A stretch of 64,000 nt of DNA, from IMG/VR virus record IMGVR_UViG_3300047476_002078, positions 62,001-126,000 of that record; one strand, 5' to 3'. The position numbers and the translations under genes were made by a program. Below are positions 3,039 through 59,297 of the stretch, piece after piece. Below the pieces are notes generated by a model that worked only from the letters and a program-made list of their open reading frames with translations, did no database searches and was not told the origin of the DNA. Each line of letters begins with the position of its first letter. The first letter of the stretch is position 1.

Positions 3039-3266
3039 ATGAACATAAAGAAAGAAATTGAGTCATTAGAAAATCGAATAGCAAATTCAGAAGACAAAAA
3101 CGACATGGCAATCGGGTATGTTAGAGACATTATGGATATGGCTCAAATGCTTGAAAACATTATTCATAATGAACCTGATTTGGAAGACTGGGTTAATGCG
3201 AAAATAACACGAAGCAGAACAGACCTAGTTGACGTTACAAAATATCTACAAAATAGACCTAAATGA
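3039..3266 (+). CDS. hypothetical protein, leader-bearing family
   Basis: GGAG RBS before ATG 3039. N-terminus MNIKKEIESLENRIANS. Confidence 0.65.
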   Translation: MNIKKEIESLENRIANSEDKNDMAIGYVRDIMDMAQMLENIIHNEPDLEDWVNAKITRSRTDLVDVTKYLQNRPK

Positions 3267-3433
3267 ACATTGAGCAAGAAATTTTAAAATTAGAAAATAA
3301 TATCAAAGAAATGACTAGCTACTTATTAATGAAAGTAAACGTAGCTGATTGGCACGCTGTCGCTGACGCAGCAATGGATATTAGAGAGTTTCAAGCTAAA
3401 ATTGATGCTTTGAAACAAATTAAACAACCGTAG
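3263..3433 (+). CDS. small hypothetical protein with leader-like N-terminus (56 aa, not in ORF track)
   Basis: MNIEQEILKLENNIK...DWHAVADAAMDIRE. Overlaps the upstream stop. Confidence 0.6.
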   Translation: MNIEQEILKLENNIKEMTSYLLMKVNVADWHAVADAAMDIREFQAKIDALKQIKQP

Positions 3434-3896
3434 AACATACTACCCTTATCGGAGGAATTGTGAGAGAAAATATTATTGTTACGTCAGTAGAATTGATTGA
3501 AGGAGGAGTTTTTAAATTAGAACTTTTAAATAAAGATACTAATGAAAAACTTTACGTTAAATCTGAGAATCTTTTTTCTTTAGTTCAAAAAGCTTTGGAA
3601 AATAAAAACAAAGAATTTTTAGAATTCAATCAAGTTCTCGTGTGAGGAGTGTGTTTGGATAAAATTAGTAAAGAAAGAGTGATCGAACTCGTAAAAATGA
3701 TGAATTTTCTTTCAGAGACAAAAAAAGAAAAATACGCTTTGAAAGAAGAATATACCATGGAAGATATGATTTCGTTCCAATGGGTTGAAGAGGAAGATAA
3801 GATACTTTTTCCTATAATTTTGAACACTACTAAGGGTAGCTATGCGGTTGATGATATTAAAAAAATACCCTATAAAATGTCTTTGAATGGTTATCA

Positions 3897-4199
3897 ATGA
3901 CGAGATGCTATTTTAATGGAACAGTTAAAAGATGTGTTAATGGGTGCTTGAAACCATTGTCTGAGTTTTATCCTCATTCAGGAAAAACAAAAAAAGGTAA
4001 AATTAAAGATAAAAGTTTATCTTGCTACTACAGACCTTATTGTAAGACTTGCCACAATCAAATAAATATCCGTAAAGTTTTAGAGAAAAAAATTAAGACT
4101 TATCCTAATAGTTTTTGGGAATGTGACAACTGCGACCATATTGTGCCCGTTTCTAAAAAATTATGCTCTAAATGTAAAACAATAAGAATAAAAAGGTAA
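3897..4199 (+). CDS. Cys-rich zinc-finger-like hypothetical protein
   Basis: Several CxxC pairs (CVNGC, CKTC, CDNC, CSKC). Confidence 0.5.
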   Translation: MTRCYFNGTVKRCVNGCLKPLSEFYPHSGKTKKGKIKDKSLSCYYRPYCKTCHNQINIRKVLEKKIKTYPNSFWECDNCDHIVPVSKKLCSKCKTIRIKR

Positions 4200-4228
4200 T
4201 TTTTTGTTCATTAATATTAAGGAATTTT

Positions 4229-5299
4229 ATGGCACATAAGAATGTTAAATTAGACCCGTCATATTGGTTATATGAACCTTCTCAAGGCAGGCTAGAGAAT
4301 AGCGAAACTTTTTTGGAAGACCTTGTAACAGATGGGTATGTTTTTGAACCTACGAGCTTAAATGCTTTAGGTTTAACTAAAGATTCTTATCTAACTGCGG
4401 AACAATTTGCAAATTTTAGAAGTTCTTTTTCCACCCCTCACAATAAAGAAGGAAAAGAGGAAAAATATTTTCACCTAAATAATGCAGAAAGGTATCTGCT
4501 TTCTAATTGGACTTCTTTGGGTTGGGGAGCCAACAAAACAGAAGTGCTAGAAAATTATAATAATTTTATTCAGAAAAATTTGCTTGATAATGATAACAAT
4601 AATGTCAGAATGAGTATTAATAGAGGTAATCTTGATTTATCTAGCTTGATAGTGAACGGAGTAGTTTCAGGTTCAGAGCAGGAGTATTTTGTTCCTATTC
4701 TTTTATTCTCAGATCAAGCAGACGATCTTTTCTCTTTAAATACTGGATTAGAAAACTTCGTTTCAACTTCAAGTCTAAGTCTTCAAATTAATCAAAGCTT
4801 TGATGACTCATTCATTGAACTACCTGACTTGCCATTTGACTTTTATTTTTTAGGTACTAATTATAAAAATTCTATATTCCTCGGCTCCAATACTTATCTA
4901 ACTTTTGGGCAAGGTAGCTCAAATTATTCAGGACTAAGTGCAAGCAATCCATTTTTGCCTAAAATTCATTTAGGTTCGGCAGATCACAGTTATCAGCGTG
5001 TCTATTGGCAACAGGTTGTTATAAATGGGCAAGACGCTTTAGTTGTAAGATATGAAGGAACTAACTCTACAGGCGGAACGCCCGGAAGCCCCAACATTGT
5101 AATGCAAATAACTTTCTTCCCAAATCAACGTATGACTGTAACTTTTGGTTCTCATGCAGGAAGGTTTGGTCAAAGAGGTATAGCAAGTGCTTCATCTTAT
5201 GTTACTACCTTTACACTAGATCAGAACACTTCTTACGCATTTAGCTCTGACGCAACAGGTTATAATTGGGTTGTTGAAGCTGGGAAATACTGGTCGTAA
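4229..5299 (+). CDS. putative virion structural/decoration protein with beta-rich, nidogen(NIDO)-like C-terminal domain
   Basis: N-terminal ~165 aa is homologous to ORF 46723. C-terminus LPFDFYFLGTNY...IFLGSNTYLTF...QITFF is Ser/Thr/Gly-rich. Confidence 0.5.
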   Translation: MAHKNVKLDPSYWLYEPSQGRLENSETFLEDLVTDGYVFEPTSLNALGLTKDSYLTAEQFANFRSSFSTPHNKEGKEEKYFHLNNAERYLLSNWTSLGWGANKTEVLENYNNFIQKNLLDNDNNNVRMSINRGNLDLSSLIVNGVVSGSEQEYFVPILLFSDQADDLFSLNTGLENFVSTSSLSLQINQSFDDSFIELPDLPFDFYFLGTNYKNSIFLGSNTYLTFGQGSSNYSGLSASNPFLPKIHLGSADHSYQRVYWQQVVINGQDALVVRYEGTNSTGGTPGSPNIVMQITFFPNQRMTVTFGSHAGRFGQRGIASASSYVTTFTLDQNTSYAFSSDATGYNWVVEAGKYWS

Positions 5300-7897: not shown

Positions 7898-8671
7898 GTT
7901 TTGGAGCAAGGCTGAAAAGGATAAAAGTAAACTATAGCTGTAGGGTTACTATATGTAATCTTACAACAGAAGATTTGTTTTTGACTAAAAGAGTAAAGTT
8001 TGTCTTCTCTGTTGTCTCAAAAGTTTTCTTCTGCAATGTTTTTTGTTTTTTGAAATATTGATACTTGTTTCTCTTTTATCTTTAGTAAGTCTTGCTTTTT
8101 ATTTTAGGAGATAATTATGAAATGGTCATTTAATCGTATTCGAGCAGCTTTAATAAACATAGAAAATGAACAGTCATACTACGCAGGAGCAAGTTTATGT
8201 ATAGACTTTGCTGACCACCCTAATGTTGTTTTAAATTTAAACGGCAGAGGGTTTTTTTACGGATTTAAAAATAGCAACAAGCAAATGAAATTTGTAGTTC
8301 CTAATGATATTAAAGATAAGCTACTTGAAATATACAAAAAATATAAAAACATTCAAAATTGATTTGTAGCGTCATTTAATAAAAAATTAAGATTCAAATT
8401 TAAAATCTTTGTGTTAATCAAAAAACACAAGGAGAAATTATATGCAAAATAACCCATTCAAAGAATTTAATGAAACAGAAATTGGTAAATCAATGATGGT
8501 AGCTTGGAAAAAATTTGTCGAAGAAAATGAAGGTTGTTACGCAGAAGACTCGATTGAAACAGCCGATTTCTTTGCAGGATTTGTTGCAGCTTGGGAACAA
8601 CAATCTGTAAAAATAGAAGAATTAGAACAAAGAATTAAAATACTTGAAAAATAATATTTTGGTTAATTTTT

Positions 8672-8708
8672 AATAAAAAAGGGGAGTTTAATGCTCCCCT
8701 TTTTTATT
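8672..8708. terminator. bidirectional intrinsic terminator
   Basis: Perfect 15-bp inverted repeat AATAAAAAAGGGGAG / CTCCCCTTTTTTATT between convergent ORF 8442-8654 and the minus-strand tRNAs. Confidence 0.85.
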
Positions 8709-8795
8709 TGGTGGCTCTGACCAGACTCGAACTGGTACGCCCTTACGGACACTCGATTTTAAATCGAGGTTGTCTACCGATTCCAACACAGAGCC
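8709..8795 (-). tRNA. tRNA-Leu(UAA)
   Basis: GGCTCTG/CAGAGCC acceptor stem, anticodon loop TTTAAAA, long variable arm, GTTCGAG T-loop, encoded CCA. Confidence 0.93.
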
Positions 8796-8819
8796 AATTC
8801 ACGACTATAATAAATATGA

Positions 8820-8896
8820 TGGTGGGACTGGCAGGACTTGAACCTGCAACCCTCCGGTTATGAGCCGGACGCTCTGACCAATTGAACTACAATCCC
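8820..8896 (-). tRNA. tRNA with CAU anticodon (probably Ile2/lysidine type, elongator Met not excluded)
   Basis: GGGATTG/CAGTCCC acceptor stem, CCGG-CTCATAA-CCGG anticodon arm, GTTCAAG, encoded CCA. Confidence 0.9.
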
Positions 8897-8969
8897 ACAT
8901 GAGGGAAATTTACCTTAGTATGATTTTTTAATCAATATGGATTTAAAAGAAAGAACATTTTTATAGGAG

Positions 8970-9239
8970 ATGATATTGAAAACAATTATTATTTTGCTTC
9001 TTTTAAGTTCATGCTCTATGACAACGACTAGAAGATCAGATTTTATTGCAGGGTGTTATATTGGAGCATCTTCAGCGTTAGGTGATGTTGTAAACGATCA
9101 AAAAATTATAAATTTTTGTATCAGGTCTTATGACAAAAATCCCAAGATTAAAGATAAATTAGACGAACTTAATGATTTATCTAAATACTTAAAAGAGTCT
9201 GAAATAACTGAAGAAGAATCTACCTATATGTTCCTCTAA
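8970..9239 (+). CDS. putative lipoprotein
   Basis: MILKTIIILLLLSSC lipobox-like signal. Confidence 0.55.
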   Translation: MILKTIIILLLLSSCSMTTTRRSDFIAGCYIGASSALGDVVNDQKIINFCIRSYDKNPKIKDKLDELNDLSKYLKESEITEEESTYMFL

Positions 9240-9252
9240 TCAGGGGGGATAT

Positions 9253-9684
9253 ATGTGGATATTATTTTTATTTTTATCATTTTATAGTTTTGCTTTTCCA
9301 AAAATTCCAAATGCAGAAATTACCTATGGTGATTTATGTAATTTATCAAATACTGATTTTGTTGAGTACCGATACCCTGAAAAAATACCTTATTGTAAAA
9401 GAAACGTGAGCAGTTACAGAAAGTCTAAAATTTACGATCTTTATAAAATTCCAGTTAGTGAAAGAAAAAATTTTACTATAGATCATCTTATACCTTTGAG
9501 TATCGGAGGCTCGAATAAAGATTCAAATTTATGGGCTGAACACTTGAGCCTAAAAGAGCAGAGAGGTTCTCTTGAATTAGATTTATTTATTTTATTAAAA
9601 TCTGGTACTATAACGCAAAAACAAGCTATAAATAGAATACTTTGTTCTAAATTTAATAATTGTTATTTAGTGGAGGAATTATGA
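9253..9684 (+). CDS. HNH-family nuclease with N-terminal signal peptide
   Basis: Hydrophobic MWILFLFLSFYSFA signal, then FTIDHLIPLSIGGSNKDSNLW HNH motif. Confidence 0.7.
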   Translation: MWILFLFLSFYSFAFPKIPNAEITYGDLCNLSNTDFVEYRYPEKIPYCKRNVSSYRKSKIYDLYKIPVSERKNFTIDHLIPLSIGGSNKDSNLWAEHLSLKEQRGSLELDLFILLKSGTITQKQAINRILCSKFNNCYLVEEL

Positions 9685-9885: not shown

Positions 9886-10170
9886 ATCGTACTTTCAAAA
9901 GAGGGTACGATGGATTTAAGTTTAAAACATTACATGGTAAAAAATTTCACAGGATTGATAATGGAAGACATTAAATACTCCGCAGGAACAAGACTTTGTT
10001 TTTTAGACCCTCAAAGTGGTGAATCTTTTGAAGGAGTTGTTGTTGAAAATTATAAATTTGGTGGAGACATTTGTGTTAATTGGGACACAGGTCTTTCAAG
10101 TTCTTATGACAAAGATTGGCTAGATAAATTTACATCAATCGTTCGTGACAGAAATATAGATTACTTTTAA

Positions 10171-10723: not shown

Positions 10724-10966
10724 ATGAAAACAGTAGATTTATTAGCAAAAATTTCCCAGCTAGAAAAAATTTCAAAAGGTAATAGAGCCGACCTTTATCT
10801 ACAAAACTCTCTTGACCATCTTAAAGATTTAAGAAAAGAAAAAGAAATTAAAACTTTAGAATTCAAAAAACTCAGAAAACTCGACAACGCCATAAGAGAA
10901 CTAATGGAGGCTATGAAAGTATTAGATGTGACTCCATTTAATCGCCCTTTTGATGTTATTTCTTGA
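10724..10966 (+). CDS. hypothetical protein, leader-bearing family
   Basis: N-terminus MKTVDLLAKISQLEKISKG. Confidence 0.6.
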   Translation: MKTVDLLAKISQLEKISKGNRADLYLQNSLDHLKDLRKEKEIKTLEFKKLRKLDNAIRELMEAMKVLDVTPFNRPFDVIS

Positions 10967-22241: not shown

Positions 22242-22248
22242 TTTTTAA

Positions 22249-22270: not shown

Positions 22271-22291
22271 AATAATTTAAAGTCTTCTCAA

Positions 22292-24902: not shown

Positions 24903-27050
24903 ATGAAAATCGACAAGAAAACACTCTCTGTTTTACAGAAACTAGCAATTACTTATCAAGAGTATAAGAAATTGCATCCTCGTACTAAGAAGACACCCGA
25001 TGACCCTCTTTTTACTTTGGCACAAGACCCAAACAAAAAAGAGTTCAAGGTTAAGCCTAAAGATATTAAAACAGTCATGCCTTCCAAGACACCTACCAAG
25101 AGTGTTCCGCAAAAGACAGACGACCCTGTTGAAAAGTTTCGCCCAAAGCTGGCTCCAAGTGCTTATCAAAAGCAGATGGATTCAAAAGAGCTTTTGAAAA
25201 ACGCTAAGAAAATGTCTTCTGACGATATGGCATGGCATCTTCTTAATTCTAAGATTGGTATGGGTTTTGAGAGTGGGGAACTTCGAGATCAAATGAAGAG
25301 TCATTTTGGTATTGCCAATATGTATGCCATGATGATTTTAAATCCAAATATATCAAAAGAAAGCCGAGACAATATTGCTTCATGGTTGCTCGATAAAGCC
25401 GGAGTATATTTTGTTTCCAGTAAATCTCTTAAAAGATTTCTCGAAGGTTGTGCGAATAAAGGCATTATCTCAAAAGAGATTTGGGAAGAAGAAGCCAATG
25501 GGGATAGTCAGCGTAAGGAAGAGGATGAGATTGCTCAAAATTACACCGCTGACCAACTTAAAAAACTTCCTGCTAAAAAGATTCAAGAGAATTGGAATGA
25601 GATTTGTCAAAACGAAAATCTTCCGACTTCCATGATTCAAAAGATGTTGGGTGATAAGGATGTGAAGAAAGCCCTTGAGTTCATGAAAAAGGGCTACATA
25701 GAAGATACAGGAGCCATGTCTGGTAAGATTGGTGAGCGTAAAAATAAAATTGGTAAAGCGTTAAAAATTCTTTCTCATAAAAATGTTCCTTTTGAAGCGT
25801 TACAAGAAGTGTTTGTACCTTCTCTTAAAAAACATCTTTCAACAAATAACTACAAGGCTTACGAAGTCGCTGAATACCTTGCGAGTCATCCTGACATAAA
25901 CAAGCCAGAGAACAGTGAGCTAAAAAAGTTAGTGCTTCAGGCTTATAAGACTCAGCTTAAATACTACAAAGACGACCCAGAATATGTGGAAGACCCTTAC
26001 AAGTCTCAACGTAACTTTGATGAGCTAAAGCACCCTTCCGCTCCCCCTGCTAACTTAAAGCTGTCGAAGGAAGAGTTCTTAGCAATTTGGAAGATTAGAG
26101 ATGAAGGTCCATATAAGTCTCAAAATGAAAGATGGTTTGAGCATCCTGATATGCCAGATGAGATTATCAAAGAGAGTTTGACTAAAAAAGATAATAAAGT
26201 AAAAGACCCTCTTGATAAATATCTTAGTGACTATTCGGAAGTTCGGAAACTCGCTTTTCATCAAGCTCGAAAAAGAAATCTCTTATCAGATGACGACTTA
26301 ATCAAAACTGTAAAAGCTAATTTGAATCTGCATGGCAATGACAATGAACTTATGAAAAAGTTCGCTGAACAAGCTTACACTTATGGAAAAAGCACTAATG
26401 ATATACCTCGTTATATTTCTAAGGGAAGTGATGAGGAACGCAAAGCTGTAGAAGAACAGATGAAAAAGTCAGCTTTCCATGAAGAGTTTGATTTTGAAGT
26501 CTCCGCAGTTTACAACATTGATAAAGAGCCACACAAAGATTTCGCAAAAACTTCTAAGAAACTTGGAAATGTAATGGAAGGTGTTTACCATGGTACAAGC
26601 TATGCAAACGCCGCTGGGATTCTTTCAGATGGGGTTAGAGTTGATACCGAAGAAAGAACAGGTTCTATGTTCGGTAGGGGTTTTTATCTAGCTTCTGCTT
26701 CTTCTAAAGCTGCCCAATATGCTGGAGAAAAATTTAGTCAGCATGATGGAGATGGGGTAGTCTTTATGCTGAATGTCGCTCTTGGTAAATCCAAAGAAAT
26801 GAAATATGGCAGACCCGAAGGAGATAATCTAAAATATCGTATGTTGAGTCCGGAAGAAAAACAAATGATTGAGGATTACAAAAAGAAAACAGGCAAAGAC
26901 CTTGATGATAAGTGGCACTACGACCATGACTCTGTAACTGCTAAGGCAGGGCAGGCTTTAGATTATGATGAGTTTGTGGTGAAAGACCCTTCTCAGCTTC
27001 AGATTAAAAAGATTGTTATTGTGAAGAAGACACCAAAGGCAAAAGTATGA
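24903..27050 (+). CDS. large protein with C-terminal PARP-type (H-Y-E) ADP-ribosyltransferase domain, leader-bearing
   Basis: YHGT...GSMFGRGFYLA...SKAAQY...VALGK...HDSV...YDEFVV parallels the PARP1 catalytic motifs. N-terminal leader plus YQEYKKLHP module. Confidence 0.85.
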   Translation: MKIDKKTLSVLQKLAITYQEYKKLHPRTKKTPDDPLFTLAQDPNKKEFKVKPKDIKTVMPSKTPTKSVPQKTDDPVEKFRPKLAPSAYQKQMDSKELLKNAKKMSSDDMAWHLLNSKIGMGFESGELRDQMKSHFGIANMYAMMILNPNISKESRDNIASWLLDKAGVYFVSSKSLKRFLEGCANKGIISKEIWEEEANGDSQRKEEDEIAQNYTADQLKKLPAKKIQENWNEICQNENLPTSMIQKMLGDKDVKKALEFMKKGYIEDTGAMSGKIGERKNKIGKALKILSHKNVPFEALQEVFVPSLKKHLSTNNYKAYEVAEYLASHPDINKPENSELKKLVLQAYKTQLKYYKDDPEYVEDPYKSQRNFDELKHPSAPPANLKLSKEEFLAIWKIRDEGPYKSQNERWFEHPDMPDEIIKESLTKKDNKVKDPLDKYLSDYSEVRKLAFHQARKRNLLSDDDLIKTVKANLNLHGNDNELMKKFAEQAYTYGKSTNDIPRYISKGSDEERKAVEEQMKKSAFHEEFDFEVSAVYNIDKEPHKDFAKTSKKLGNVMEGVYHGTSYANAAGILSDGVRVDTEERTGSMFGRGFYLASASSKAAQYAGEKFSQHDGDGVVFMLNVALGKSKEMKYGRPEGDNLKYRMLSPEEKQMIEDYKKKTGKDLDDKWHYDHDSVTAKAGQALDYDEFVVKDPSQLQIKKIVIVKKTPKAKV

Positions 27051-27275: not shown

Positions 27276-27905
27276 ATGAAAAAAATAGTTTCAAGCCTTC
27301 ATAAAATTGCGTCAGATTTAGAAAAAACTGCTTTAGATTACAATGAGTATAAAAAGCTACACCCGAACACAAAAAAGACACCTTCTGACCCGATGTTTAA
27401 AGAAAATAAACCTCAACAGGAGAGTCAGGCTCCCAAACAACAAGCTCCAAATCAACAACCAAAATCTGAGCCTAAACAAGAATCTGCTCCTAAAGTAAAG
27501 AAAACTGTTAGTGATTTTACGGATGCTGAATTAGATGAAATTGGTTTCATGCCGTCTTATAGAAAAAGTTTAAGTGATAAAGAAGTTTTGGAAGAATATA
27601 ACGCTAAAAATAAAGTTGATGAGCTTGTAAAATCTAAAAAATTGAACCTTTCTGATTATCCTGATACTGCCTTTACCTCTATTCTGCAAGATTACAAAGA
27701 AAAACAAAATAAAGGAAAATTAAGTGATGATGATTTTGAACCAGAAAACTTTTATACCGCAGTTAGAAAACATTTAAGCGATAAAGAAGTTACTCCTAAA
27801 ACTGTGAGGGAAGCGATTCGTGTTTATCACCCAGATGCAAAACTCACAAATGACCAAATAAGTTCTGTAATGAATATGTATGAAAAAAAACAAGGTTGGG
27901 GCTAA
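27276..27905 (+). CDS. hypothetical protein, leader plus YNEYKKLHP module, Gln/Pro/Lys linker
   Basis: MKKIVSSLHKIASDLEKTA-LDYNEYKKLHPNTKKTPSDPMF. Confidence 0.75.
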   Translation: MKKIVSSLHKIASDLEKTALDYNEYKKLHPNTKKTPSDPMFKENKPQQESQAPKQQAPNQQPKSEPKQESAPKVKKTVSDFTDAELDEIGFMPSYRKSLSDKEVLEEYNAKNKVDELVKSKKLNLSDYPDTAFTSILQDYKEKQNKGKLSDDDFEPENFYTAVRKHLSDKEVTPKTVREAIRVYHPDAKLTNDQISSVMNMYEKKQGWG

Positions 27906-27906: not shown

Positions 27907-28299
27907 ATGAAATTAAAAGAACAGATACAAAATTTAGAGAAAAAAATCGCTTCTAAAGCGGATGCTGCTGATATTTTTGATGAGTTTGTTAAAAACATCA
28001 TGGAGCCTCATAGAAAGAAATTTATCGAAGATCAAAACTCACCTTGGAACAAAAGCAGAGAAACTGAAGCTTCTTTAAAAGAAAAAGCAAAGTTGATTGA
28101 AGAAAGAATGAAAGAAGGTAGAGGTTTCCGTGAGGTTTGTGATGATAAAGATATTTATTTAGGAAGCGTTGATTCTAACTTCATTTATGATAAATATGTT
28201 CTAAAATCTTGGAAAGGCTCTTTTGAAGATTGGAAAGATAAAGAGATGCGTTTAGACGCTAGAAGATTTTTTGTAGATTTAAAATTAATTAAGTGGTGA
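27907..28299 (+). CDS. hypothetical protein, leader-bearing family
   Basis: MKLKEQIQNLEKKIASKA. Confidence 0.65.
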   Translation: MKLKEQIQNLEKKIASKADAADIFDEFVKNIMEPHRKKFIEDQNSPWNKSRETEASLKEKAKLIEERMKEGRGFREVCDDKDIYLGSVDSNFIYDKYVLKSWKGSFEDWKDKEMRLDARRFFVDLKLIKW

Positions 28300-28304: not shown

Positions 28305-29411
28305 ATGAAAGATTTAATTCCGGGCGGAAAGTCAGATAAAAAACCAGACTCAGCTTTTGATTCCAAGCAACTTCAAAAAGGTATCAAGGTTGAGCGAGAG
28401 CACACAAAAAACAAACAGCTTGCTAAAGAGATTGCAAAAGATCATTTATCTGAATTTTCTGATTACTATGATAGATTAGAAAAGATGGAAAAGTCAGCAC
28501 ATTCAAAAGTTCTCTTAAAAAAAATAAAAGAGCTTGCACACAAAATTTCTGCTTCTAACGAGCATCCTATAACTAAAGGCTTAGTGCTGTCCTTTTTTGC
28601 TACTAACATCGAGATTGGTGTTATTGACGAAGCTACGAAAAAACCTATCACTATTGCGAAAATTAATAAATCGTTTAAGAAAGATAGTCAAAGTGAAGTT
28701 ATCGAACTAGCTAAAGAGATATTTAATAATCTCGATGCTTCTGGTTACACTAAAGGCATGGACTTCAAGGCTCAACCTTACTACCGAGAATTAAATCAGG
28801 CTTATCTTAATTTCAAGAAAAGATTGTCGGAACTTTCAGAGAACCAATTAGAAAAGATGGGACTCGGTAAGCATCCATATAAATATTTGGGAGCTATGGA
28901 GTCACCTTCAAAAGAACTTCAAGAGCAAAATCCAGAAGCCTATAACAACGCACTAAGAAATTTCCCAAGATTTGATGCAGGTGGAATTGGAAGCTGTGCT
29001 AGATGTTACAACGCAATTACTATTCACCATATTATTAAATCTAGTGATGGAAAGGTATTTCCTTTAGGTAGTGAGTGCGTTTGGACATTGAATGATAATA
29101 AAATCGAGTCTGAAGTTAAAAAAGAAAAGACAAAGATTGAGAAAAGTAAAAGAGACGTAAGAAATAAGGCAAAATTATCTGATCTGGAAGACATTATAAA
29201 CAATCCTGAGTTAATCAAGAAAATGAAAAGTATGTCATACAAAATGCCAGCCGCTTTCAGTAAATGGGATGAGGGCAAAAGGCAATGGTACTTAAATACA
29301 ATTGTTGGAGATGGGACTTACTACGATTATGTTTTACACATGATTAAAATTTCTGGCACTTCAGGAAAACAAAGAATACTAAAAGAAGTTAAAAAAGATT
29401 TGGGGTTATAA
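28305..29411 (+). CDS. DUF5661-like N-terminal domain protein with an internal leader-like segment
   Basis: KGIKVEREHT...AKEIAKDHLSE...YYDRLEKME, then KKIKELAHKISAS, and a CARC...GSEC zinc motif. Confidence 0.6.
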   Translation: MKDLIPGGKSDKKPDSAFDSKQLQKGIKVEREHTKNKQLAKEIAKDHLSEFSDYYDRLEKMEKSAHSKVLLKKIKELAHKISASNEHPITKGLVLSFFATNIEIGVIDEATKKPITIAKINKSFKKDSQSEVIELAKEIFNNLDASGYTKGMDFKAQPYYRELNQAYLNFKKRLSELSENQLEKMGLGKHPYKYLGAMESPSKELQEQNPEAYNNALRNFPRFDAGGIGSCARCYNAITIHHIIKSSDGKVFPLGSECVWTLNDNKIESEVKKEKTKIEKSKRDVRNKAKLSDLEDIINNPELIKKMKSMSYKMPAAFSKWDEGKRQWYLNTIVGDGTYYDYVLHMIKISGTSGKQRILKEVKKDLGL

Positions 29412-29412: not shown

Positions 29413-29715
29413 ATGAGCATTGTTAAAAAATTAAATAAAGTTGCAGAGTTTCTTGAAAAATCATCCGCAAGTGAGTTCGACAAATGGCTCGATACTTTCC
29501 TTGAAGAGAAAGGCATTGACCTTGAAGATGATTTCACAGTTCAAGGTGCTTTTTATGGTGATAACTACATGACTTATGAAGTTGTTGTAGAGCACATTAA
29601 AATCGCTCCGAAGCACGAACAAAAGAAAATTAAAGACATGCTCGTAAAAATTGATTTTAAGAATGGGGATGTGAAACATTTTCTCCGTCATTTAGGACAG
29701 GCTTTAGCAAAATGA
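29413..29715 (+). CDS. hypothetical protein, leader-bearing family
   Basis: MSIVKKLNKVAEFLEKSSA. Confidence 0.7.
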   Translation: MSIVKKLNKVAEFLEKSSASEFDKWLDTFLEEKGIDLEDDFTVQGAFYGDNYMTYEVVVEHIKIAPKHEQKKIKDMLVKIDFKNGDVKHFLRHLGQALAK

Positions 29716-29903
29716 AAAATATTCTTTCTAAACTTAATGAATTAGCTACAAAAATAGAGAAAACATCTTCAAAACGTATTCCTGTTTATCTGAGTCAAGA
29801 AGAGTTGAAACTTATTAAGCAAGGGCTTGATAAAGTTCAAGGGTCAGGAGTCTTAAAACTTATCGAAAGAGTCGAAGCAGAGTTAGACACTTTCGAGGAA
29901 TAG
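29712..29903 (+). CDS. hypothetical protein, leader-bearing family
   Basis: MKNILSKLNELATKIEKTSS. Confidence 0.65.
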   Translation: MKNILSKLNELATKIEKTSSKRIPVYLSQEELKLIKQGLDKVQGSGVLKLIERVEAELDTFEE

Positions 29904-31071: not shown

Positions 31072-31094
31072 TATGTAACAAATAGGAGGATTCC

Positions 31095-33410: not shown

Positions 33411-34232
33411 CTATTTAAAATTTAATTGAACCTGTGAATCTGTCCCATCTTCATGAGCAAAAGTAAAATAATGCTGTTGATGCCATTTTGATTTGATTGC
33501 ATTTGACAGTCTCATTTTAACTTTCCCTGCTTCATCAAAATCAGTAAAAATGTTTTTAAGATGGCTTCCTGCTACGTGCCCTGTGCCCTTCATCTCATCT
33601 CCTGCATATTGTTCCCAGAGAGGCTTTAAATGATTATGCCCTGCGGTAGAGTGGATAACGGAATGTTGTCCATATTTTTTACCAATTGCTTCCAAGTCTT
33701 TTGGAGAAACTTTATTTGTGTGGTGAACCATGAAAACATTTTCATCATTCCCCATGAAGTGCCCTGTACCTCTGTGAAAAACAACGCCCATTTTCTGAAG
33801 TTCTTGCATGAGTTGTTGTGTACGTTTTTTATTTTCTTCGGAATCTGTTTTTTGACCATGTGGGTTTTCTGCGGTTAGTACCGTAAATGAACCGTGGTTT
33901 AAATGATGCTTGAGAAATTTTTTATCTATTGGGGCTGCTCCGGAAATAAAAGGTCGTGCGTTTTCGGAAGTCTTTACTTGCGTTCTTGTTCTCAATTCTT
34001 TGAACTTATCAAAGTCTAATTTTGTATCGGGATGATTCTGCTTAAACATATCGTAAGCAGTATTAATGCTCTCGTCTGATTTAGTCTGTGGTTTATTTTG
34101 AGAAGGTTGAGCAAAAAGAGGGTCATTTGGTCTTTTTTTAGTCAAAGGGTGTAACTTCTTATAGTCTTCATAAGTTATTTTGGCTTTTTTAAGCTTATTT
34201 TCAAGTTCAGAGATTAAGTCAGATACTTTCAT
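33411..34232 (-). CDS. leader plus YEDYKKLHP module protein with a DUF3293-like C-terminal domain
   Basis: MKVSDLISELENKLKKAK-ITYEDYKKLHPLTKKRPNDPLF, and FTVLTAENP...EENKKRTQQL...GTGHF...ENVFMV. Confidence 0.65.
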   Translation of the reverse strand: MKVSDLISELENKLKKAKITYEDYKKLHPLTKKRPNDPLFAQPSQNKPQTKSDESINTAYDMFKQNHPDTKLDFDKFKELRTRTQVKTSENARPFISGAAPIDKKFLKHHLNHGSFTVLTAENPHGQKTDSEENKKRTQQLMQELQKMGVVFHRGTGHFMGNDENVFMVHHTNKVSPKDLEAIGKKYGQHSVIHSTAGHNHLKPLWEQYAGDEMKGTGHVAGSHLKNIFTDFDEAGKVKMRLSNAIKSKWHQQHYFTFAHEDGTDSQVQLNFK

Positions 34233-46722: not shown

Positions 46723-47763
46723 ATGGCACATACAAATTACACAATACCTACGAGTGTTTGGAGCATTAGTTCTGGAAATTTAGTGAACTCTACTTTATTT
46801 TCTTTTAACACTCCATGTTATATAATTAATCCTACTACATTGAACAATTTAGGACTTACATACAACTCAAGTTTATCGGAAGCTCAATTTCAAAATTTGA
46901 AATCAACTTTGTCTTCACCTGTAAGTTTTGAGGCATCTGACTACTTAATTTCAAACTGGATAAGTTGTGGTTGGGGTTCAAACGCTAGTGAAGTTTTAGC
47001 TAATTATAACTCTTTCGTTAATAACCATTTAGAGCTTGGTGGAAGTTTAAGAGAGCAATTAAATAAAGCCTCTATACCTTTGACAAGTGTTGTAACTTTA
47101 GGCGAGCTTTCTAGCTCAAATTATTTCCTACCTATTTTAGTTTTTTCAAACCAAACAGACGCAGACCCTTTGGCAGGAAATTCTGAGCAAAATGAAAACG
47201 GTTCTATGGTAGCCGTTCAAAGCATTAACATATCTACTCCATTTGAAAGCAATATTATGTTTTCACATGATAACCCTGTGGAAAATGCAGGCTCATACAA
47301 GTATGAAGTTTATAGATCACTTTTAGGGAACCATTCATTAGAAAGAAGCTTTACAGTGAGCGGTTATTTTGATGAACCTATTTCAAACACTGTAAATGTT
47401 TATGGAGGAGGGGATTACTTTATTAAAGTTTATCCACTAACTCTGCCCGACACTTTAGGACCATCAACAACTTCTAATACAGTCTATGTAGATTCAAGTC
47501 TTCCTCAAAAACCTACAATATTTTCTGCGATTTGGGAGGGAACAGGCATTTCTTTGAACTGGTCTTCAGCTTTTTATCCAGACATAACAGCTTTTAACAT
47601 ATACAGAGACAATGTTTTAATCGCTACAATTAATGAGCCTGCCTTTGACACAACATATTTGGATACTACTGCCGAGGAATTTGGTTCTTATTATTATGAA
47701 GTAGAGGCTTCTGTAAATTTTGCCGTAGAAAAGAGTGATCTTTTCTATTATCCAACATTATGA
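46723..47763 (+). CDS. putative virion structural protein with fibronectin-III-like C-terminal domains
   Basis: N-terminus homologous to ORF 4229. C-terminus ISLNWS...AFNIYRDNVLIA...TYLDTT...YYYEVEA is FN3-like. Confidence 0.6.
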   Translation: MAHTNYTIPTSVWSISSGNLVNSTLFSFNTPCYIINPTTLNNLGLTYNSSLSEAQFQNLKSTLSSPVSFEASDYLISNWISCGWGSNASEVLANYNSFVNNHLELGGSLREQLNKASIPLTSVVTLGELSSSNYFLPILVFSNQTDADPLAGNSEQNENGSMVAVQSINISTPFESNIMFSHDNPVENAGSYKYEVYRSLLGNHSLERSFTVSGYFDEPISNTVNVYGGGDYFIKVYPLTLPDTLGPSTTSNTVYVDSSLPQKPTIFSAIWEGTGISLNWSSAFYPDITAFNIYRDNVLIATINEPAFDTTYLDTTAEEFGSYYYEVEASVNFAVEKSDLFYYPTL

Positions 47764-48185
47764 AAATAACAAATAAACTAATTAAAATTTCAAACTACTT
47801 AGATAAAATTGCCAAGTCAGGTTCAGTTTCACTGAATTATGAGTTTGATTACGATGATTTCAACTTAGATAAACTTGAAGAACTTCTTAAAAAATCTGGA
47901 ATTAGATTATCAGAAATAGCTGAATTGGATAGCGAAGGGAACATTGAGGAACTAAAGAAAATTTTTTGGGATGCTTTGGATTCTTTTGAAATTGAAGCGG
48001 AATGTTCTTTTTATAAATCTAGTGATTCTGAAGGTTATCCAGAACCAAACGAAACAGAGATTGAAACTACTTATCCAAAGCTAAAAATTTTAGGAAAATC
48101 AATTGATATTGAGTCTGTCATAATTAAAAGAACCAAAGAAAAAATTGAAGATAAGCTTTTTGAAAAGTTTATGGATGAATACTAA
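47760..48185 (+). CDS. acidic hypothetical protein, leader-bearing family
   Basis: MKITNKLIKISNYLDKIAKS. Confidence 0.7.
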   Translation: MKITNKLIKISNYLDKIAKSGSVSLNYEFDYDDFNLDKLEELLKKSGIRLSEIAELDSEGNIEELKKIFWDALDSFEIEAECSFYKSSDSEGYPEPNETEIETTYPKLKILGKSIDIESVIIKRTKEKIEDKLFEKFMDEY

Positions 48186-49432: not shown

Positions 49433-49433
49433 T

Positions 49434-49931
49434 ATGAGTACCGTTAAAAATCTTTTGAAAGTTGCTTCTTTTTTAGAAAAAATCGCAGAAAAAAAGAATA
49501 TATACTTAGTTTCTTCAGAAGGTAATTTTTCTTATGAAAGAGTTGTAGGTATTTCAACTCCAGACATGGAAAAAACTGATAGCGTTGATGGAGATGTTAG
49601 ATATGAGCTTGAAAAAGCTATTCAAGACGATTTGAGAGGTTTTCCTCTTCACAAGTACGTGGCGAATGATACAAATCTACCTATTACTAAAATTCAATTA
49701 AAAGAAGTGAATAACGATGGAGTTGCTGTATATGAACTTCATTGTGAAAAAGACTTGTCTAAAGAAGAAATGGAAAAATTAAAAAGTGCTTTTTCTGGAC
49801 AACTATCGGATGGTTGGGGAGAAGGGTTCGAGCAGAATGAATTCTATGTTAAAGATACTGCCAGAAGCACGACTACTTACTACTATAGCCCGTGGACTCG
49901 AAACGGAAAAATAACAATTAAAAAAGCTTAA
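49434..49931 (+). CDS. hypothetical protein, leader-bearing family
   Basis: MSTVKNLLKVASFLEKIA. C-terminal GQLSDGWGEGFEQ motif. Confidence 0.7.
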   Translation: MSTVKNLLKVASFLEKIAEKKNIYLVSSEGNFSYERVVGISTPDMEKTDSVDGDVRYELEKAIQDDLRGFPLHKYVANDTNLPITKIQLKEVNNDGVAVYELHCEKDLSKEEMEKLKSAFSGQLSDGWGEGFEQNEFYVKDTARSTTTYYYSPWTRNGKITIKKA

Positions 49932-49935: not shown

Positions 49936-50388
49936 ATGAAAAAAGTATTATCAGAAATTGCTAATTTAGAATCTAAACTATCCTCTGAAAAAAAAGCCAA
50001 ATATAATCCAGACGGTGCTTGGTATTATTATGGTTTCGGTGGAGGTGGTCTTGAGCATCCCATTTATCATGATGAGGGTCGGTACATAGATGTTCACAAA
50101 TACATCAATACTCCATCTACAACAAAAGGGTTGGTTGAGATCAGTCAATTTGAGCAAGCTATTAAAAAACTTTTAAGTAATATCAATTCAGCTTCTTCTA
50201 AAAATGCAAATTATGTAAACCTTGGATGGAGAGTCGATAAAGAAGTCCTTGATGCTTTACTTAATCCTGTTTTTTTAGACACTAATGACCAATTCAAAGA
50301 CTATGAGCGTTGGGAGAAAAAGTGGAAAGAAGAGAACAATACTACTAGCAATCCTACACAAGAACAAATAATTAAAAACTACAGGTAA
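49936..50388 (+). CDS. hypothetical protein, leader-bearing family
   Basis: MKKVLSEIANLESKLSSEKKA. Confidence 0.7.
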   Translation: MKKVLSEIANLESKLSSEKKAKYNPDGAWYYYGFGGGGLEHPIYHDEGRYIDVHKYINTPSTTKGLVEISQFEQAIKKLLSNINSASSKNANYVNLGWRVDKEVLDALLNPVFLDTNDQFKDYERWEKKWKEENNTTSNPTQEQIIKNYR

Positions 50389-50394: not shown

Positions 50395-50691
50395 ATGAAC
50401 ATCAAAGAAGAAATTAAAAAACTTGAAGACAAAATAAGCTCAGAAAAGAAAGCCTCAGACTCTACTCTTCAACAAGTAGCGGAGGCAGTTAAAGGTCACA
50501 ATTTAATGTCTATGAGAAAACCTTTAGAAACCATATTCAAGAAAAAAGACATTGATTTTTCGTTTGAGCCGATTCCAGCTTTCCATATCAAACATAAAGG
50601 AAAAACAATTCTCATTGTAAATAAAAATAATGTTGAAGAAGTAGATTCTTCGGATGTGGTCGTAGGAAATGTTGTAATTGGCTATCTTTAA
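50395..50691 (+). CDS. hypothetical protein, leader-bearing family
   Basis: MNIKEEIKKLEDKISSEKKA. Confidence 0.7.
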   Translation: MNIKEEIKKLEDKISSEKKASDSTLQQVAEAVKGHNLMSMRKPLETIFKKKDIDFSFEPIPAFHIKHKGKTILIVNKNNVEEVDSSDVVVGNVVIGYL

Positions 50692-51274: not shown

Positions 51275-53474
51275 TTTATGTACGGGAATCTCGGTGATGC
51301 GATAAAAAATTTAGTGGTATTTTTAGTAGTGTCTTTAGTTATAACATTTCCACTGGCTCTTTGGAAATTATACGACATCTTTATCTGGTTTAAGAATCAT
51401 ATTCATTTTGGAGTTTATCCATGATTGAAATGAGCAAGGAAGATTTGGTTAGTGAATTAATCAAACAAAAAAATTTAATAGAAAGGATGAAGAAAGATTA
51501 TCACGAAGACATGGAGAGAAAAAATAAAGAAATAAACTTTTTAAAATCTGAATGTAAAAGAGTTTATGACCCAATCAGGGAATTTTGGAACATGGAAAAA
51601 AATGAAGAAGCCGAACAAATGAAGAAAAAATTAACTGCTATTGAAAGTGAACTTCGCCACATATATGACTACTCAGTAGGAGAATCCGAAGTTCAAGCAG
51701 GTATTAGTAATATCCTATCAGATCACTTTAAAAAGGCGTGAAATATGACAGCAAATGAATTTAAAGAACTATCTAATTGGCAAAAAATTAGAACCTTGTC
51801 TGGAGTTGTACCTCAGACAGGTAGCTTAGAAACAGATGTTAAAATATTAACTGACCGTTTAGCAATATGTTGTCTTATTTCAAGAGTTGAAGAAGGTGAT
51901 GCAACAGAAGAATTTTTAAACGAAATCATAGATAAAGCCTTTGGAGTATAATGTGAAAATTGCAGAAGCTATGACTTCTAACAAACCTTTTAAAAGACCA
52001 GAAAGTGATGAAATAGTTCAATGGTTTTTAGGAGGAACAGGACCTTTTTCAGACTTAGTACAGTGTGATTATTTTACCGTAAATGGAGAATTTACAACTG
52101 ACTTATCGTTATATGCTTCAGATATTTTAGCAACAGATTGGCAAATAATAGGCACGACCGAAGCGAACGAGGCTGAAGAAGAGTAGCTAGGTGGAAGCGA
52201 GATGACTGTGTTGACCCGAACGGTATGCGAGCCTTGAAATAATCGGGTCCCGCCTCTTCAAAGGAAAAATTATGAGTGAAGAAAAGTTTAGAAGGTATTT
52301 AGAACTCAATTACAATATTGAAAAAATTAAACACGAAAATACTTTTGAATGGGCTGTAAATGCTTTGGAAGATATGGACATACAATTAGGTATGGAATCT
52401 CATAGAATAAGCAGACTTGAAGAGTTTTGTAAGGAGTTTGTTTACGGTGAAGAAAATCCCCAATATTACAAAACAATGACAGAAAAAGTTGAAAGCTTAG
52501 AACATAAATTGAAAAAGGCACTCGAAGTTATTAAATTTTATGCAGAACATCATAACTGGGATTTTAGCTGTACTATTTGGGATGGTGATTGGGAGCCATT
52601 AAATTCTAATGCTCTTACAAAAAATCTTCTCGTAGGGGGCAAAAAAGCTAGAGACTTTTTAAAAGAAGAAAACAAATGAGTATCGCTTTATTAATTGTGT
52701 TTCTATTCGGTATGTTAATTTACTGTTTCTCTGTGGCTTCAAAAATAGAAGAGGATTATGTGCCATTTAAAGAGTCTTACACTCTAGGAGAATTTTTAAT
52801 ATCAATTTTAACTTTTCCTTATTACATATTTCATAAAATTTCTTTTATATCGCTTAAATCAGTTTTTTCATTTTTAGAATTTATATTCAACTTAGAAATA
52901 AGAAAAAGAAAATGATCGAAAATAATAATCAACTACAGGTAGCCTATAATAAAATAAAGTCATTGGAGAAATCTCTTGATGAGATGAAGGTTGAATCAGT
53001 GTTTGATAAAACTTCTCAAATGCAAATAAAATCTCTGATTGATGAAATAAAATCAGAAATTAAAGAGTATTTAAAAAAAGGATAAAATGATTTATTTTTT
53101 TATTTGGATGTTTGTAGGCTCTTTTGCCATGAACTTAGCATGGATAGAAGAACATCAAAAAACTCTCAATGATTTTGATTACTGGAAAGAATCAAAATAT
53201 CGAAAACATGAGTATGTGAAAAGTTTAATACTTGGATTAATTTTAGGACCCCTTATGTTAAAAGGTCTTTTCAGTGAAAAAAAGTGAAGCTGTCATAGCA
53301 TTAAGCGAAAAATTACAAAAAAGTAAAAATTTATTCGACGGTTATAAAAAAGGAAGTATTACTTTAAAATGCCTCTGTGACAATTTAGCTGATAGAGCTT
53401 TGAATTTTTCAACTGATAAAATTTACAAGGTTCCTCCCGATGGAAAATGGGAAGATGAATATCTCGAAGAATAA

Positions 53475-56973: not shown

Positions 56974-57303
56974 GGAGGTTGTAATGAAACTATCGGAAGT
57001 AATTAAAAAAGCCAGAGTTGGTGGATATTTCAGAAGACCTTGTTGGTCTGGAGAAAGCTGGCTAGTAGTTAAAGAAGATAATTCTATTAAATTTAGGTCA
57101 ACTGGAAATAAATGGACACCTAAGTTGGAAGACTTGGATGCAGATGACTATCAGTATCAAGTTCAAAATGAAATGTGGGAAATTTGGTGTGAAAATGAAA
57201 ATGGTGAAATTTGTATTCATCCAAAACTCATTACTGAAAATCAAAAAAGTGAATTTAATAACATTGTAATCAGTAAAAAGCATATCATCACAAGAGGCTT
57301 AAA

Positions 57304-57522
57304 TTGAGTCAAAATTTCGTGATACCCTTTGGTAAATATAAAAATTACGATTTACTTCATGTGGCTGAAAGTGAACCAAAATATTTAATTTGGCTTGATT
57401 CAGTAGCGGAAGGTAATTTGAAAGTTGCTTTAGAATCATTTTTAAATTCTAAGTATTTTAAAGACTGCTTGATTGAACATGAGTACGAAGATAACGAAGA
57501 AGATATGTGGGATTGGAATTAA
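57304..57522 (+). CDS. small DUF3820-like protein
   Basis: IPFGKYKN...P.YL.W motif. Confidence 0.5.
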   Translation: MSQNFVIPFGKYKNYDLLHVAESEPKYLIWLDSVAEGNLKVALESFLNSKYFKDCLIEHEYEDNEEDMWDWN

Positions 57523-57707
57523 TGGAAATTAAAAAATGCCCTGAATGTGGAAATGATTCTGGAGACGTAGAATTTGAGGATAGAATAAGCCATTTTGCTT
57601 TTGTTGAATGTTTGACTTGCAGACACAGATCAGACTCTATTGAAGGTCGAACAAAAGAGGAAGCGATAGAAAAAGCTATAGACCTTTGGAATAAAGAGAG
57701 GAAATAA
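57507..57707 (+). CDS. Lar-like restriction-alleviation zinc-finger protein
   Basis: KKCPECG...FVECLTC...EEAIEKAIDLWN. Confidence 0.6.
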   Translation: MGLELMEIKKCPECGNDSGDVEFEDRISHFAFVECLTCRHRSDSIEGRTKEEAIEKAIDLWNKERK

Positions 57708-58679
57708 TGAAACCTTTTGAAATAAAAGTTGTAACAGACGGTGGTCTTTGGGTTGAACATAATTACCCTTGCCCTATTTATTCAAATTTAAACAGTGTTT
57801 ATGATATGGATAAAGGCATTTTTAAGCCATCTTGGGTTGCTCAAAAAAGAGGCTGGAATATCGTGTGTGCTGACACTTGGTTTAAGAGAATGATTTTGAG
57901 ATACTTATTTAAAACAGATAATGTTCCAAGTTCACTCTATAAAGAGCAACTTAAAAAGTTAAAAGATTGAAATTATTTAATTTTTCACGAATTTTTGAAT
58001 TTTTCATTCCAATGAAAAATGAAAACAAGTGCAAAATACACAAATGGAATTTTGAAACAGTATCTTGTGGGTATTGTTTGTTAGAAAAATTATTCGGAGA
58101 TGTAAAAATGCAAGATCAAGTCACAGGAACATTTTATCTTGTAAAAAATAAAAATATTGTTGGTGAAGCCGTTGTAATGAGTTTAACCAATGTTGTTTTT
58201 CATCTTTATTCAGATATAAGAAACACACAAAATACGACTTACGAACAAATAACTAAAAAGTATAAACTTGAAAGAGTCATTGGGAATTCTTTCTTAAAAG
58301 GAAAACAGTGATTCAATATTTTAAAGAAGGTTCAAAAGTATATTTCAAAGAAGGGCAGTATCAAGGACTCATAGGTGAAGTCTTAGGAGATGATTGTGTT
58401 TTGCTTACAGTAAAAGTAAAACTGACAGATGATAAAATTGTAGAGGTTCAAAATTTAGTTCTTCAAAAAGCTCCTGAAATAAAGAAAGAATATTTATGAA
58501 AATAAAGCAATCCGAAGTTATACAAAAACTTGCTAAACTATTCGATTCTATACCAGAAGAAGCGAGCAGTTATCATGTATGTGACATGCTTATGTATAAA
58601 GCAGAAAAAATGGGACTACTTATTAAAGAGGAACATGATGAGGAGTATTATTACATATTACAAACTGTAATAAAAACAG

Positions 58680-59297
58680 ATGAAAAAAATATTTAAAGCA
58701 ATATCAAAATTAGAGAAGAAAATTTCTGGTCTTTCTTATCAAGAGTATAAGAAAAAATATCCAAAGACTAAGAAACAGCAAAATGACCTTCTATTTACTG
58801 AACCTTCTAAACTTGTTCGTAATCCAAACACTGACGGTTTAAAAGAATTGATTACTCAAGACTACGCAGACAGATTGGATAAAAAACCTATTAAGGAAAA
58901 AATACAACCCACAATAAATCCAATTTTTAAAAATGTTGATGTGGAAGAAGAACACGATGAAATTTACCGTGCTGCCAGTGAACTTGGGGTTAATGGAGAA
59001 GAATTAAAAAGCAAAATTAAGTCTGCAAAACCTCAACGCCTATCTAATGAAATTTGGAGTCAATTACAGAACACAGATAGTTGGGAAATTTCAAGTAAAG
59101 AAGACGTTGATAAACTTTCCAAAAAATATAACAGAGACGCTGATAGTATTAGAGACGCTTTTAAAAATGGTAAAGCCTTGCCTACTCCCATGATTGCTAA
59201 AAAAGGCAATGAATATGTTTTAATCGGTGGGAACACTCGATTAATGGTATCTAAAGAAATGGGAATAAAGCCTTTTGTTGTAATAGCCGAAGTCTAA
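58680..59297 (+). CDS. leader plus YQEYKKKYP module protein with a ParB/Srx-like C-terminal domain
   Basis: MKKIFKAISKLEKKISG-LSYQEYKKKYPKTKKQQNDLLF, and PTPMI...YVLIGGNTRL. Confidence 0.7.
   Translation: MKKIFKAISKLEKKISGLSYQEYKKKYPKTKKQQNDLLFTEPSKLVRNPNTDGLKELITQDYADRLDKKPIKEKIQPTINPIFKNVDVEEEHDEIYRAASELGVNGEELKSKIKSAKPQRLSNEIWSQLQNTDSWEISSKEDVDKLSKKYNRDADSIRDAFKNGKALPTPMIAKKGNEYVLIGGNTRLMVSKEMGIKPFVVIAEV

Follow-up and report, generated by a model that had tools for sequence, protein, structure and literature searches.

Fifteen proteins encoded in one stretch of an uncultured phage genome share an amphipathic N-terminal leader, which is a genuine peptide-level address tag whose similarity is modular and restricted to the N-terminus. 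The stretch, referred to here as the window, covers 64,000 nucleotides and corresponds to bases 62001-126000 of the 355,874-bp JGI contig Ga0485304_000001 (3300047476; IMGVR_UViG_3300047476_002078). The contig has a GC content of about 32%, and no near-identical DNA is found among 50,697 deposited phage genomes. Judged by its sequence, its source is an uncultured phage-G-like jumbo myovirus. The leader is the helical first half of a bipartite module of about 40 residues, and the contig encodes at least seven proteins with the module and at least 15 with the helix only, grouped in arrays; contig-wide gene counts are lower bounds, because about 170 kb of the contig was examined. The tag may well be a capsid-targeting label that loads effectors for injection, a proposal for which we see the chances as balanced. 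Its removal by the head protease is rather doubtful.

The helical character of the leaders distinguishes them from the other N-termini of the window. The mean helical hydrophobic moment over residues 2-17 is 0.52 in the 15 leaders and 0.25 in the 119 other window N-termini (Mann-Whitney p = 2e-8), and just 2.5% of the latter reach the median of the former. The mean net charge over the same residues is +1.7. The consensus h-x-x-L-E-x-K-h-A/S extends over about two heptads (residues ~2-17), and the L-E pair, or I-E or L-D in its place, is present in 13 of the 15 leaders and in most helices of family members from outside the window. No leader has more than three consecutive hydrophobic residues among its first 25, as expected from the preliminary description, which had noted that a hydrophobic core is missing. 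The leaders are thus not Sec, Tat or lipoprotein signals, none of the 15 having a hydrophobic core of about seven or more residues after a basic N-region.

The leaders also resemble one another far more than shuffled N-termini do. When all 12-residue windows in the first 22 residues of every window gene were compared with BLOSUM scores, without use of the earlier list of leaders, 34 pairs scored at least 28, as against a mean of 9.6 and a maximum of 22 in 200 composition-preserving shuffles; 19 pairs scored at least 30 (shuffle mean 4.0, maximum 10). The pairs at the top are those already claimed, of both helix types A and B, and at score 28 the largest group of linked proteins, the one listed, consists of claimed type-B proteins only. 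By a leave-self-out nearest-neighbour score, all 21 leaders, six of them from outside the window, lie above all 119 unclaimed window N-termini. Regular-expression patterns match N-termini 6-40 times more often than internal positions, although these counts were defined post hoc and are illustrative only.

All 16 peptides quoted in the preliminary description are found at the starts given there. Their N-terminal position holds for 15 of them, whereas in the protein starting at 28305 the helix follows an N-terminal DUF5661 domain and lies at about residue 70, so that this protein does not belong to a set defined by its N-terminus. Gene starts come from a simple open reading frame (ORF) caller, whose agreement with the depositor's calls was checked for 79-100 kb and 295-327 kb only. 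The tagged genes of the window, with protein lengths in amino acids (aa), are as follows.

24903..27050, + strand: PARP protein, 715 aa; full module with a shortened helix, residues 1-37
27276..27905, + strand: 209-aa protein; full module with a type-A helix, residues 1-41
33411..34232, - strand: DUF3293 protein, 273 aa; full module with a type-B helix, residues 1-40, then a linker and DUF3293 at 119-192
58680..59297, + strand: 205-aa protein; full, slightly degenerate module, residues 1-39
29413..29715, + strand: 100-aa protein; helix only, type A, residues 1-19/20, on a phrog_6004 body
29712..29903, + strand: 63-aa protein; helix only, type A
27907..28299, + strand: 130-aa protein; helix only, type B
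47760..48185, + strand: 141-aa protein; helix only, type A; clear by pairwise score
49061..49432, + strand: 123-aa protein; helix only, type A, with Lys replacing the conserved Glu
49434..49931, + strand: 165-aa protein; helix only, type A; start 24 nt inside the longest ORF (49410)
49936..50388, + strand: 150-aa protein; helix only, type B
50395..50691, + strand: 98-aa protein; helix only, type B
3039..3266, + strand: 75-aa protein; helix only, type B
3263..3433, + strand: 56-aa protein; helix only, type B
10724..10966, + strand: 80-aa protein; helix only, intermediate type
53274..53474, + strand: 66-aa candidate extra member, absent from the preliminary description; degenerate helix with a weak Y-K-K remnant
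28305..29411, + strand: DUF5661 protein, 368 aa, within the leader-gene cluster; non-member with an internal leader-like helix at ~70-86

Profile searches show that the helix motif is loose. A single hidden Markov model (HMM) of both types separates just seven of the 15 leaders from all non-members when each is left out in turn, the proteins at 47760, 49061, 49936 and 24903 being marginal. A helix HMM trained solely on family members from outside the window was scanned against the 172 window genes, and it ranks the protein at 3039 first, 27907 second, 49936 third, 53274 fourth, 10724 fifth and 50395 seventh; the first two score higher than anything in 20 shuffled proteomes, with 10.2 bits for 3039 against a shuffle maximum of 5.9. 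This model misses the type-A helix-only leaders among the 172 genes, and their membership rests on pairwise likeness to the 27276 leader and among themselves. The 53274 candidate is weak; its BLAST match to the 33411 protein has an E value of 0.007.

Selection acts on the peptide rather than on a DNA repeat, because conserved leader residues are often encoded by different codons and the upstream DNA is unrelated. A dispersed DNA repeat or mobile element was considered and ruled out, as nucleotide conservation does not exceed protein conservation. A search for dispersed k-mer families returned none besides a collagen-like gene, and nothing convincing was found as a shared promoter or ribosome-binding site upstream of tagged and head genes.

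Sequence comparison indicates that the tag is an add-on to independent bodies. Residues 20-100 of the 29413 protein match positions 2-85 of the 88-position phrog_6004 profile, and residue 3 of its homologue gp97 of mycobacteriophage Thonko (83 aa) aligns to residue 22. Among 60 homologues of this body, 41 carry an extension of 0-4 residues and are untagged; three (P0074, P0092 and P0076) bear different amphipathic-helix leaders, and three others bear Arg-rich extensions. A natural in-frame chimera occurs on a 1.5-kb contig from another sample: in the 146-aa protein P0003, the 27907 body is preceded by the leader of the 27276 protein and the first part of its second motif, as though recombination between two leaders had deleted the 27276 body. 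The untagged homologues and this swap bear out the earlier claim that the leader is set on independent bodies. That the bodies are unrelated holds in part only: four proteins share 40-150 residues, and weak similarity continues past the leader among 3039, 50395 and 27907 and between 47760 and 49434 (E values of 1e-4 to 0.02). Further arrays of small leader-bearing genes lie outside the window, at L007:8208-8501, 8512-9213, 9230-9493 and 9992-10375 and at L020:13572-13838(-) and 13840-14073(-), and include one tandem paralogue pair with the same body and different leaders; L007, L008, L010, L020 and L021 are other stretches of the same contig, each with its own numbering.

The bipartite module and its family

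In the full module, the helix is directly followed by a second motif, Y-x-E-Y-K-K-x-H-P-x-T-K-K-x-P-x-D-P-L/M-F, and a low-complexity linker then leads to the cargo. Four window proteins (24903, 27276, 33411(-) and 58680) carry the whole module and about 11 the helix only; outside the window, module genes are found at L007:9992-10375, L008:10016-12007 (663 aa) and L010:9962-10348. In the 24903 protein, a Y-x-E-Y-K-K-L-H-P motif is followed by a long linker or extra region and by a PARP catalytic domain at 512-707, and in the 27276 protein a Pro/Lys/Gln-rich linker precedes a helical body. The second motif has what we take to be a faint resemblance to DNA-binding or clamp-binding peptides.

A profile of about 45 residues of the module matches 69 clusters at E <0.001 among 1.84 billion representative proteins, nearly all of them at residues 1-45 of proteins from 48 to 706 aa in length. 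The family consensus starts with a type-B helix, M-K-x-h-L-A-E-I-x-x-L-E-x-K-L-A, and a type-A helix takes its place before the second motif in the 27276 protein, P0008 and P0032. The two helix types distinguished in the preliminary description therefore exist, but they are variants of one element rather than two systems, because the same second motif follows both. Members of the family have been located on contigs of 127, 312, 345 and 356 kb; the contigs matched in a metagenome scan with the module are just 1-3 kb long, and a tblastn search against INPHARED found no cultured carrier. The module is a well-defined family of about 40 residues that is unannotated, having no Pfam or PHROG assignment, and it is suitable for curation.

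The Pfam domains of the module-bearing proteins are PARP (four proteins), LPD1 (three), GNAT (two), topoisomerase IB, DUF3293 and ADPrib_exo_Tox. In the window, the effector-type cargo anticipated by the preliminary description is represented by PARP (24903) and DUF3293 (33411(-)), whereas its ParB-like assignment for the 58680 protein finds no Pfam support even at E = 1; searches of the tagged bodies against Pfam and PHROGs returned nothing beyond PARP, DUF3293, DUF5661 and phrog_6004. A 73-aa ORF at 27047-27268 lies directly after the PARP gene, and on an unrelated contig (L019) a PARP gene with the module is followed by a 76-aa ORF whose start looks alike by eye. This arrangement suggests a cognate partner or antidote.

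AlphaFold2 modelling of the 27276 protein with the family alignment predicts residues 1-40 at a pLDDT (the model's per-residue confidence score) of 81-95, with a helix at 2-17, a second helix at 22-28, an extended Pro-rich segment at 29-41 and a disordered linker. A Foldseek search of the model against the PDB gave no match.

Head genes, related phages and other features of the contig

The head module is located at 296-303 kb of the contig and the baseplate genes at 333-342 kb. The major capsid protein (289 aa) matches phrog_2522 at 1e-50 and PDB entry 6wkk at 4e-64, the latter being gp27, the major capsid protein of phage G. It is 74.6% identical to the capsid protein of the uncultured huge phage LR745208.1, 52% to that of Tunturiibacter phage Tunturi_5 and 38% to that of phage G. 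A head maturation protease of 543 aa (L021:16201-17832(-)) matches phrog_18299 at 2e-12; it has no significant Pfam family match, and only low-complexity matches were found among PDB sequences. About 20 tandem P-E-Q-A-Q repeats lie between its protease domain and its C-terminal helical region. An acidic scaffold-like protein of 435 aa (L021:14371-15678(-)) without a family match and two Gly/Ala-rich small proteins are encoded in the same module. The prohead-protease setting assumed earlier is thus in place, and the machinery for T4-style targeting and trimming is present.

Among 129 unselected genes from outside the window, ten have a nearest-neighbour score of at least 25 to the leaders. They include those of a 91-aa protein adjoining the scaffold gene (26.7) and of the capsid protein (25.3 at its N-terminus); seven of the remaining eight are module or leader-like genes. 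Such leader-like signals in the head module are suggestive only, as judged from sequence likeness. One module gene lies directly after baseplate and virion genes. A likeness of scaffold helices to the leaders, seen by eye, is not significant. An uncalled 76-aa ORF with a GTG start (L021 ~15999-16229 (-), contig 299642-299872) runs over the stop codon of the protease gene. It is exceptionally rich in Arg and Lys, starts with a type-B-like helix and has weak scores (24 by nearest neighbour, 2.5 bits by HMM), and its product could be an internal DNA-binding head protein. An actin-like protein of 348 aa (L020:6708-7754(-); Volactin in precomputed Pfam annotation) is encoded between the head and baseplate regions.

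LR745208.1 (485 kb, GC 55%) has a tag of its own. The same unbiased clustering of N-termini reveals a distinct, strongly conserved leader of about 30 residues, M-T-T-L-R-S-K-L-I-R-L-A-H-E-N-P-A-L-R..., on eight proteins whose similarity ends after 25-50 residues. A tblastn search finds 11 copies in this genome and none in other deposited phages. The loci recorded with it, one of them with an internal copy, are the following.

20283-20732(-): LR745208.1 leader gene
30891-31433(-): LR745208.1 leader gene
274678-275832(-): LR745208.1 leader gene
351543-351824: LR745208.1 leader gene
351838-352536: LR745208.1 leader gene
398171-398575(-): LR745208.1 leader gene
431790-433268: LR745208.1 gene with an internal copy of the leader
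433231-433653: LR745208.1 leader gene

One leader gene of LR745208.1 lies between the scaffold-like and capsid genes. The 146-aa product of L010:9518-9958 is 47% identical (8e-41) to the C-terminal domain (residues 337-492) of the 431790-433268 protein, in which the internal leader copy precedes this domain. In both phages, the gene for the shared domain is directly followed by a tagged gene, with the module here and with the phage's own leader in LR745208.1. The two tags therefore occupy the same syntenic slot behind a conserved gene, and the shared domain could be a partner or cargo.

Phage G (JN638751.1) also appears to have its own tag. In its first 99 kb, which contains 167 genes, an M-K-R-L-I-K-K-type heptapeptide starts nine proteins, as compared with 0.06 expected from internal positions, again a post hoc, illustrative count.

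gp5, gp9, gp13, gp17, gp38, gp53, gp57, gp126, gp141: phage G tagged genes, M-K-R-L-I-K-K-type start

Seven of the nine are in the first 50 kb, along with the terminase, portal and capsid genes, and gp13 and gp17 flank the portal gene. A sub-threshold PARP match in gp53 begins at residue 8, right after the tag.

Several other features of the window and contig were recorded. The window contains three paralogous genes for cytosine-5 DNA methyltransferases, nearly identical at their N-termini, at 14747-15610(-), 18820-19758 and 19755-20834, PF00145 being on record for the second and third. Paralogous proteins of about 350 aa with an M-A-H start and a similar N-terminal region are encoded at 4229-5299 and 46723-47763 of the window and at L019:10598-11620; the last of these has an fn3 match and lies beside a 1343-aa protein, and the group may be structural. 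Four tRNA genes (Leu-taa, Met-cat, Gln-ttg and Arg-tct) are found at 8709-8896(-), 10171-10245(+) and 33300-33376(-), three of the four on the strand opposite nearly all protein genes, and an Rfam search of the window returned tRNAs only. The source record calls no gene in about 550 nt at 22241-22795; this segment is locally GC-richer (38% vs 31%), and relaxing the threshold brought no Rfam match either. Starts resembling those of lipoproteins or signal peptides, with a Cys after Ser-Ser or a similar lipobox, are seen in small ORFs at 591-701, 698-913, 8976-9239 and 38281-38532; they differ from the leaders and hint that some phage proteins are directed to the envelope. A very long collagen-like Gly-X-Y run is encoded at L010:14500-20078 (+), downstream of glycosyltransferase genes.

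Proposed capsid targeting and alternative roles

We infer capsid targeting, injection and cleavage of the tagged proteins from gene content and from the distribution of the tag. The helix would dock on a component of the prohead core, either the scaffold or portal-proximal proteins, and the tagged protein would then be packaged inside the capsid and enter the next host together with the DNA, as is the case for Alt and the internal proteins of T4. Trimming of the tag by the head maturation protease may follow, and the second motif may have a function of its own and be retained after maturation, for instance for DNA association inside the head. The proposal of a targeting pro-peptide made in the preliminary description agrees with an N-terminal add-on tag on effector-type enzymes and with the presence of a protease and a scaffold-like gene, whereas no protease consensus could be defined. 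That relatives have tags of their own, some in or beside the head module, would be expected of phage-specific capsid-targeting signals, and the overlap of the cargo with virion-delivered polyvalent proteins (PMC5512222) fits capsid targeting. A broader and more tentative proposal, which we hold slightly less probable than not to be right, is that phage-G-like megaphages have lineage-specific, interchangeable N-terminal tags, each bringing into the capsid a large set of single-domain effectors that turns over rapidly; these tags would be the helix with Y-K-K-x-H-P-x-T-K-K in the window phage, T-L-R-S-K-L-I-R-L-A-H in LR745208.1 and M-K-R-L-I-K-K in phage G.

A number of observations weigh against capsid targeting. 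Most tagged genes are surrounded by small, early-looking genes outside the structural operons, and the module is absent from LR745208.1, a close relative by its capsid protein, which means that this head type does not always come with it. No head-module protein is matched significantly by the leader HMMs, and the nearest-neighbour signal in the head module is modest (two of 12 genes at 25 or higher). The leaders contain no consistent protease motif: the L-E pair is kept and the residue two before the Glu is D, F, K, N, S, E, Q or A, so that neither the T4 nor the phiKZ consensus applies. Reading the leader end as a T4 L/I-x-E or phiKZ S/A/G-x-E site was accordingly rejected as inconsistent, and the conserved L-E pair is the only candidate cleavage feature in the sequences. 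In a few database proteins (P0013, P0017, P0053, P0055-57 and P0060) the module is internal or duplicated. The confident AlphaFold2 model could represent a small functional domain rather than a disposable propeptide.

The AlphaFold2 confidence, the internal copies, the absence from the relative and the early-gene surroundings keep open an intracellular docking or oligomerisation role. The helix, with or without the basic Pro-rich motif, would recruit phage proteins to a hub such as a host complex, the nucleoid or a phage factory, or would dimerise them, with no packaging involved. The clean a/d heptad pattern of the helix with its E/K flanks, the compact and confident modelled module, the basic, S/T-P-K-K-like second motif ending in D-P-(L/M)-F, the location of most tagged genes among early-type small genes and the internal position of the module in some proteins all agree with such a role. 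However, it leaves unexplained why relatives place unrelated tags on equally diverse proteins, including products of genes in or beside head modules, and why long disordered linkers lead to enzymes such as PARP, and the cargo set is shared in part with virion-delivered polyvalent proteins. We therefore consider docking without packaging unlikely, while giving it appreciable weight.

The high hydrophobic moment and net positive charge of the leaders would also suit placement of the proteins at the inner membrane by an amphipathic helix lying in its plane. However, one helix position is occupied by Glu, or in a few leaders by Asp or Gln, in nearly the whole set, several of the type-B leaders carry no net charge or a negative one (0 for 3039, -2 for 3263 and -1 for 50395), the hydrophobic face is narrow and coiled-coil-like, and the second conserved motif is left unaccounted for, which makes membrane targeting very improbable. 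Scarcely any more room is left for a shared degron or regulatory tag controlling when phage proteins are removed or translated, to which we give lower credence still: the restriction to the N-terminus, the common M-K-K starts and the ClpXP encoded by the relative phage G (PMC12484599) would agree with it, but no ClpXP or adaptor gene was seen in the examined part of the contig, peptide conservation over 16-40 residues with helical periodicity goes beyond the needs of known N-degrons, and neither the DNA nor the upstream regions are conserved. Chance is the least credible explanation, because, although Lys-rich helical N-termini are common in an AT-rich phage, coiled-coil-like internal matches exist and the mixed leave-one-out HMM fails for about half of the members, an eye-picked artefact would account neither for pair counts above all 200 shuffles and the N-terminal excess of the post hoc patterns, nor for an externally trained HMM that ranks window helix-only proteins first to third and a helix conserved before an unrelated strong motif in the 69 external clusters; it is largely refuted for the core set, and single marginal members (47760, 49061 and 53274) could still fit it.

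If the tag is a packaging signal, the injected proteins of a huge uncultured phage could be listed from sequence alone. About 20 genes in this genome and the 69 database clusters, most of them without a functional annotation, would then be candidate first-wave effectors or anti-defence proteins. The capsid-targeting principle of T4 and P1 would reach the phage-G clade, with tags swapped between lineages while cargo is shuffled. Because phage G can be cultivated and apparently has its own tag, the idea is open to experimental test.

Comparison with known phage systems

The closest parallel is the capsid-targeting sequence of T4, which is found on the internal proteins IPI-III, Alt and gp24 (Mullaney and Black 1996, as cited in PMC5694885). 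Both are short N-terminal peptides (10-20 aa) common to otherwise unrelated proteins of one phage and have a conserved Glu near the end of the tag; in both phages the cargo includes an ADP-ribosylating enzyme, and a prohead protease and a scaffold-like core protein are present. However, no sequence resemblance is apparent by eye, and the helix here is often followed by a second conserved motif of 20 residues and a long disordered linker. The cleavage consensus of T4, L/I-x-E, does not occur consistently here, packaging and cleavage are putative, and the head is phage-G-like with a small HK97-type capsid protein rather than T4-like. Because tags differ even among the window phage, LR745208.1 and phage G, homology to the T4 sequence is not expected.

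In phage P1, the first 30 residues of DarB suffice for packaging (PMC9024508), so that an N-terminal signal of at most 30 residues likewise sends an anti-defence or effector protein into the capsid. The P1 signal was defined by truncation and fusion experiments on DarB alone, whereas one tag family here extends over about 20 genes per genome and 69 database clusters. The head-protein propeptides of phiKZ, SPN3US and 201phi2-1 are cut at S/A/G-x-E (PMC5694885). These are also jumbo phages with many ejection proteins that carry N-terminal propeptides, and their paralogues have identical N-termini and diverging bodies. Their propeptides, however, are mostly longer than 100 residues and were identified by mass spectrometry; both their motif and the family of the protease are different, and they contain no shared bipartite module.

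The polyvalent proteins of phages and conjugative elements are predicted to be delivered with the DNA (Iyer et al. 2017, PMC5512222). Each combines two to fifteen disparate effector domains in one polypeptide, whereas the effectors here are separate and each has its own copy of the tag. By Pfam, a tagged protein contains at most one distinct type of effector domain, the only double hits being overlapping matches to the same segment, either of DUF3293 and S-AdoMet_lyase or of related GNAT models. The cargo nevertheless overlaps in LPD1, ADP-ribosyltransferase-type and other effector enzymes, and the LPD-type and host-modifying enzyme domains that characterise polyvalent proteins are also found in the module-bearing proteins.

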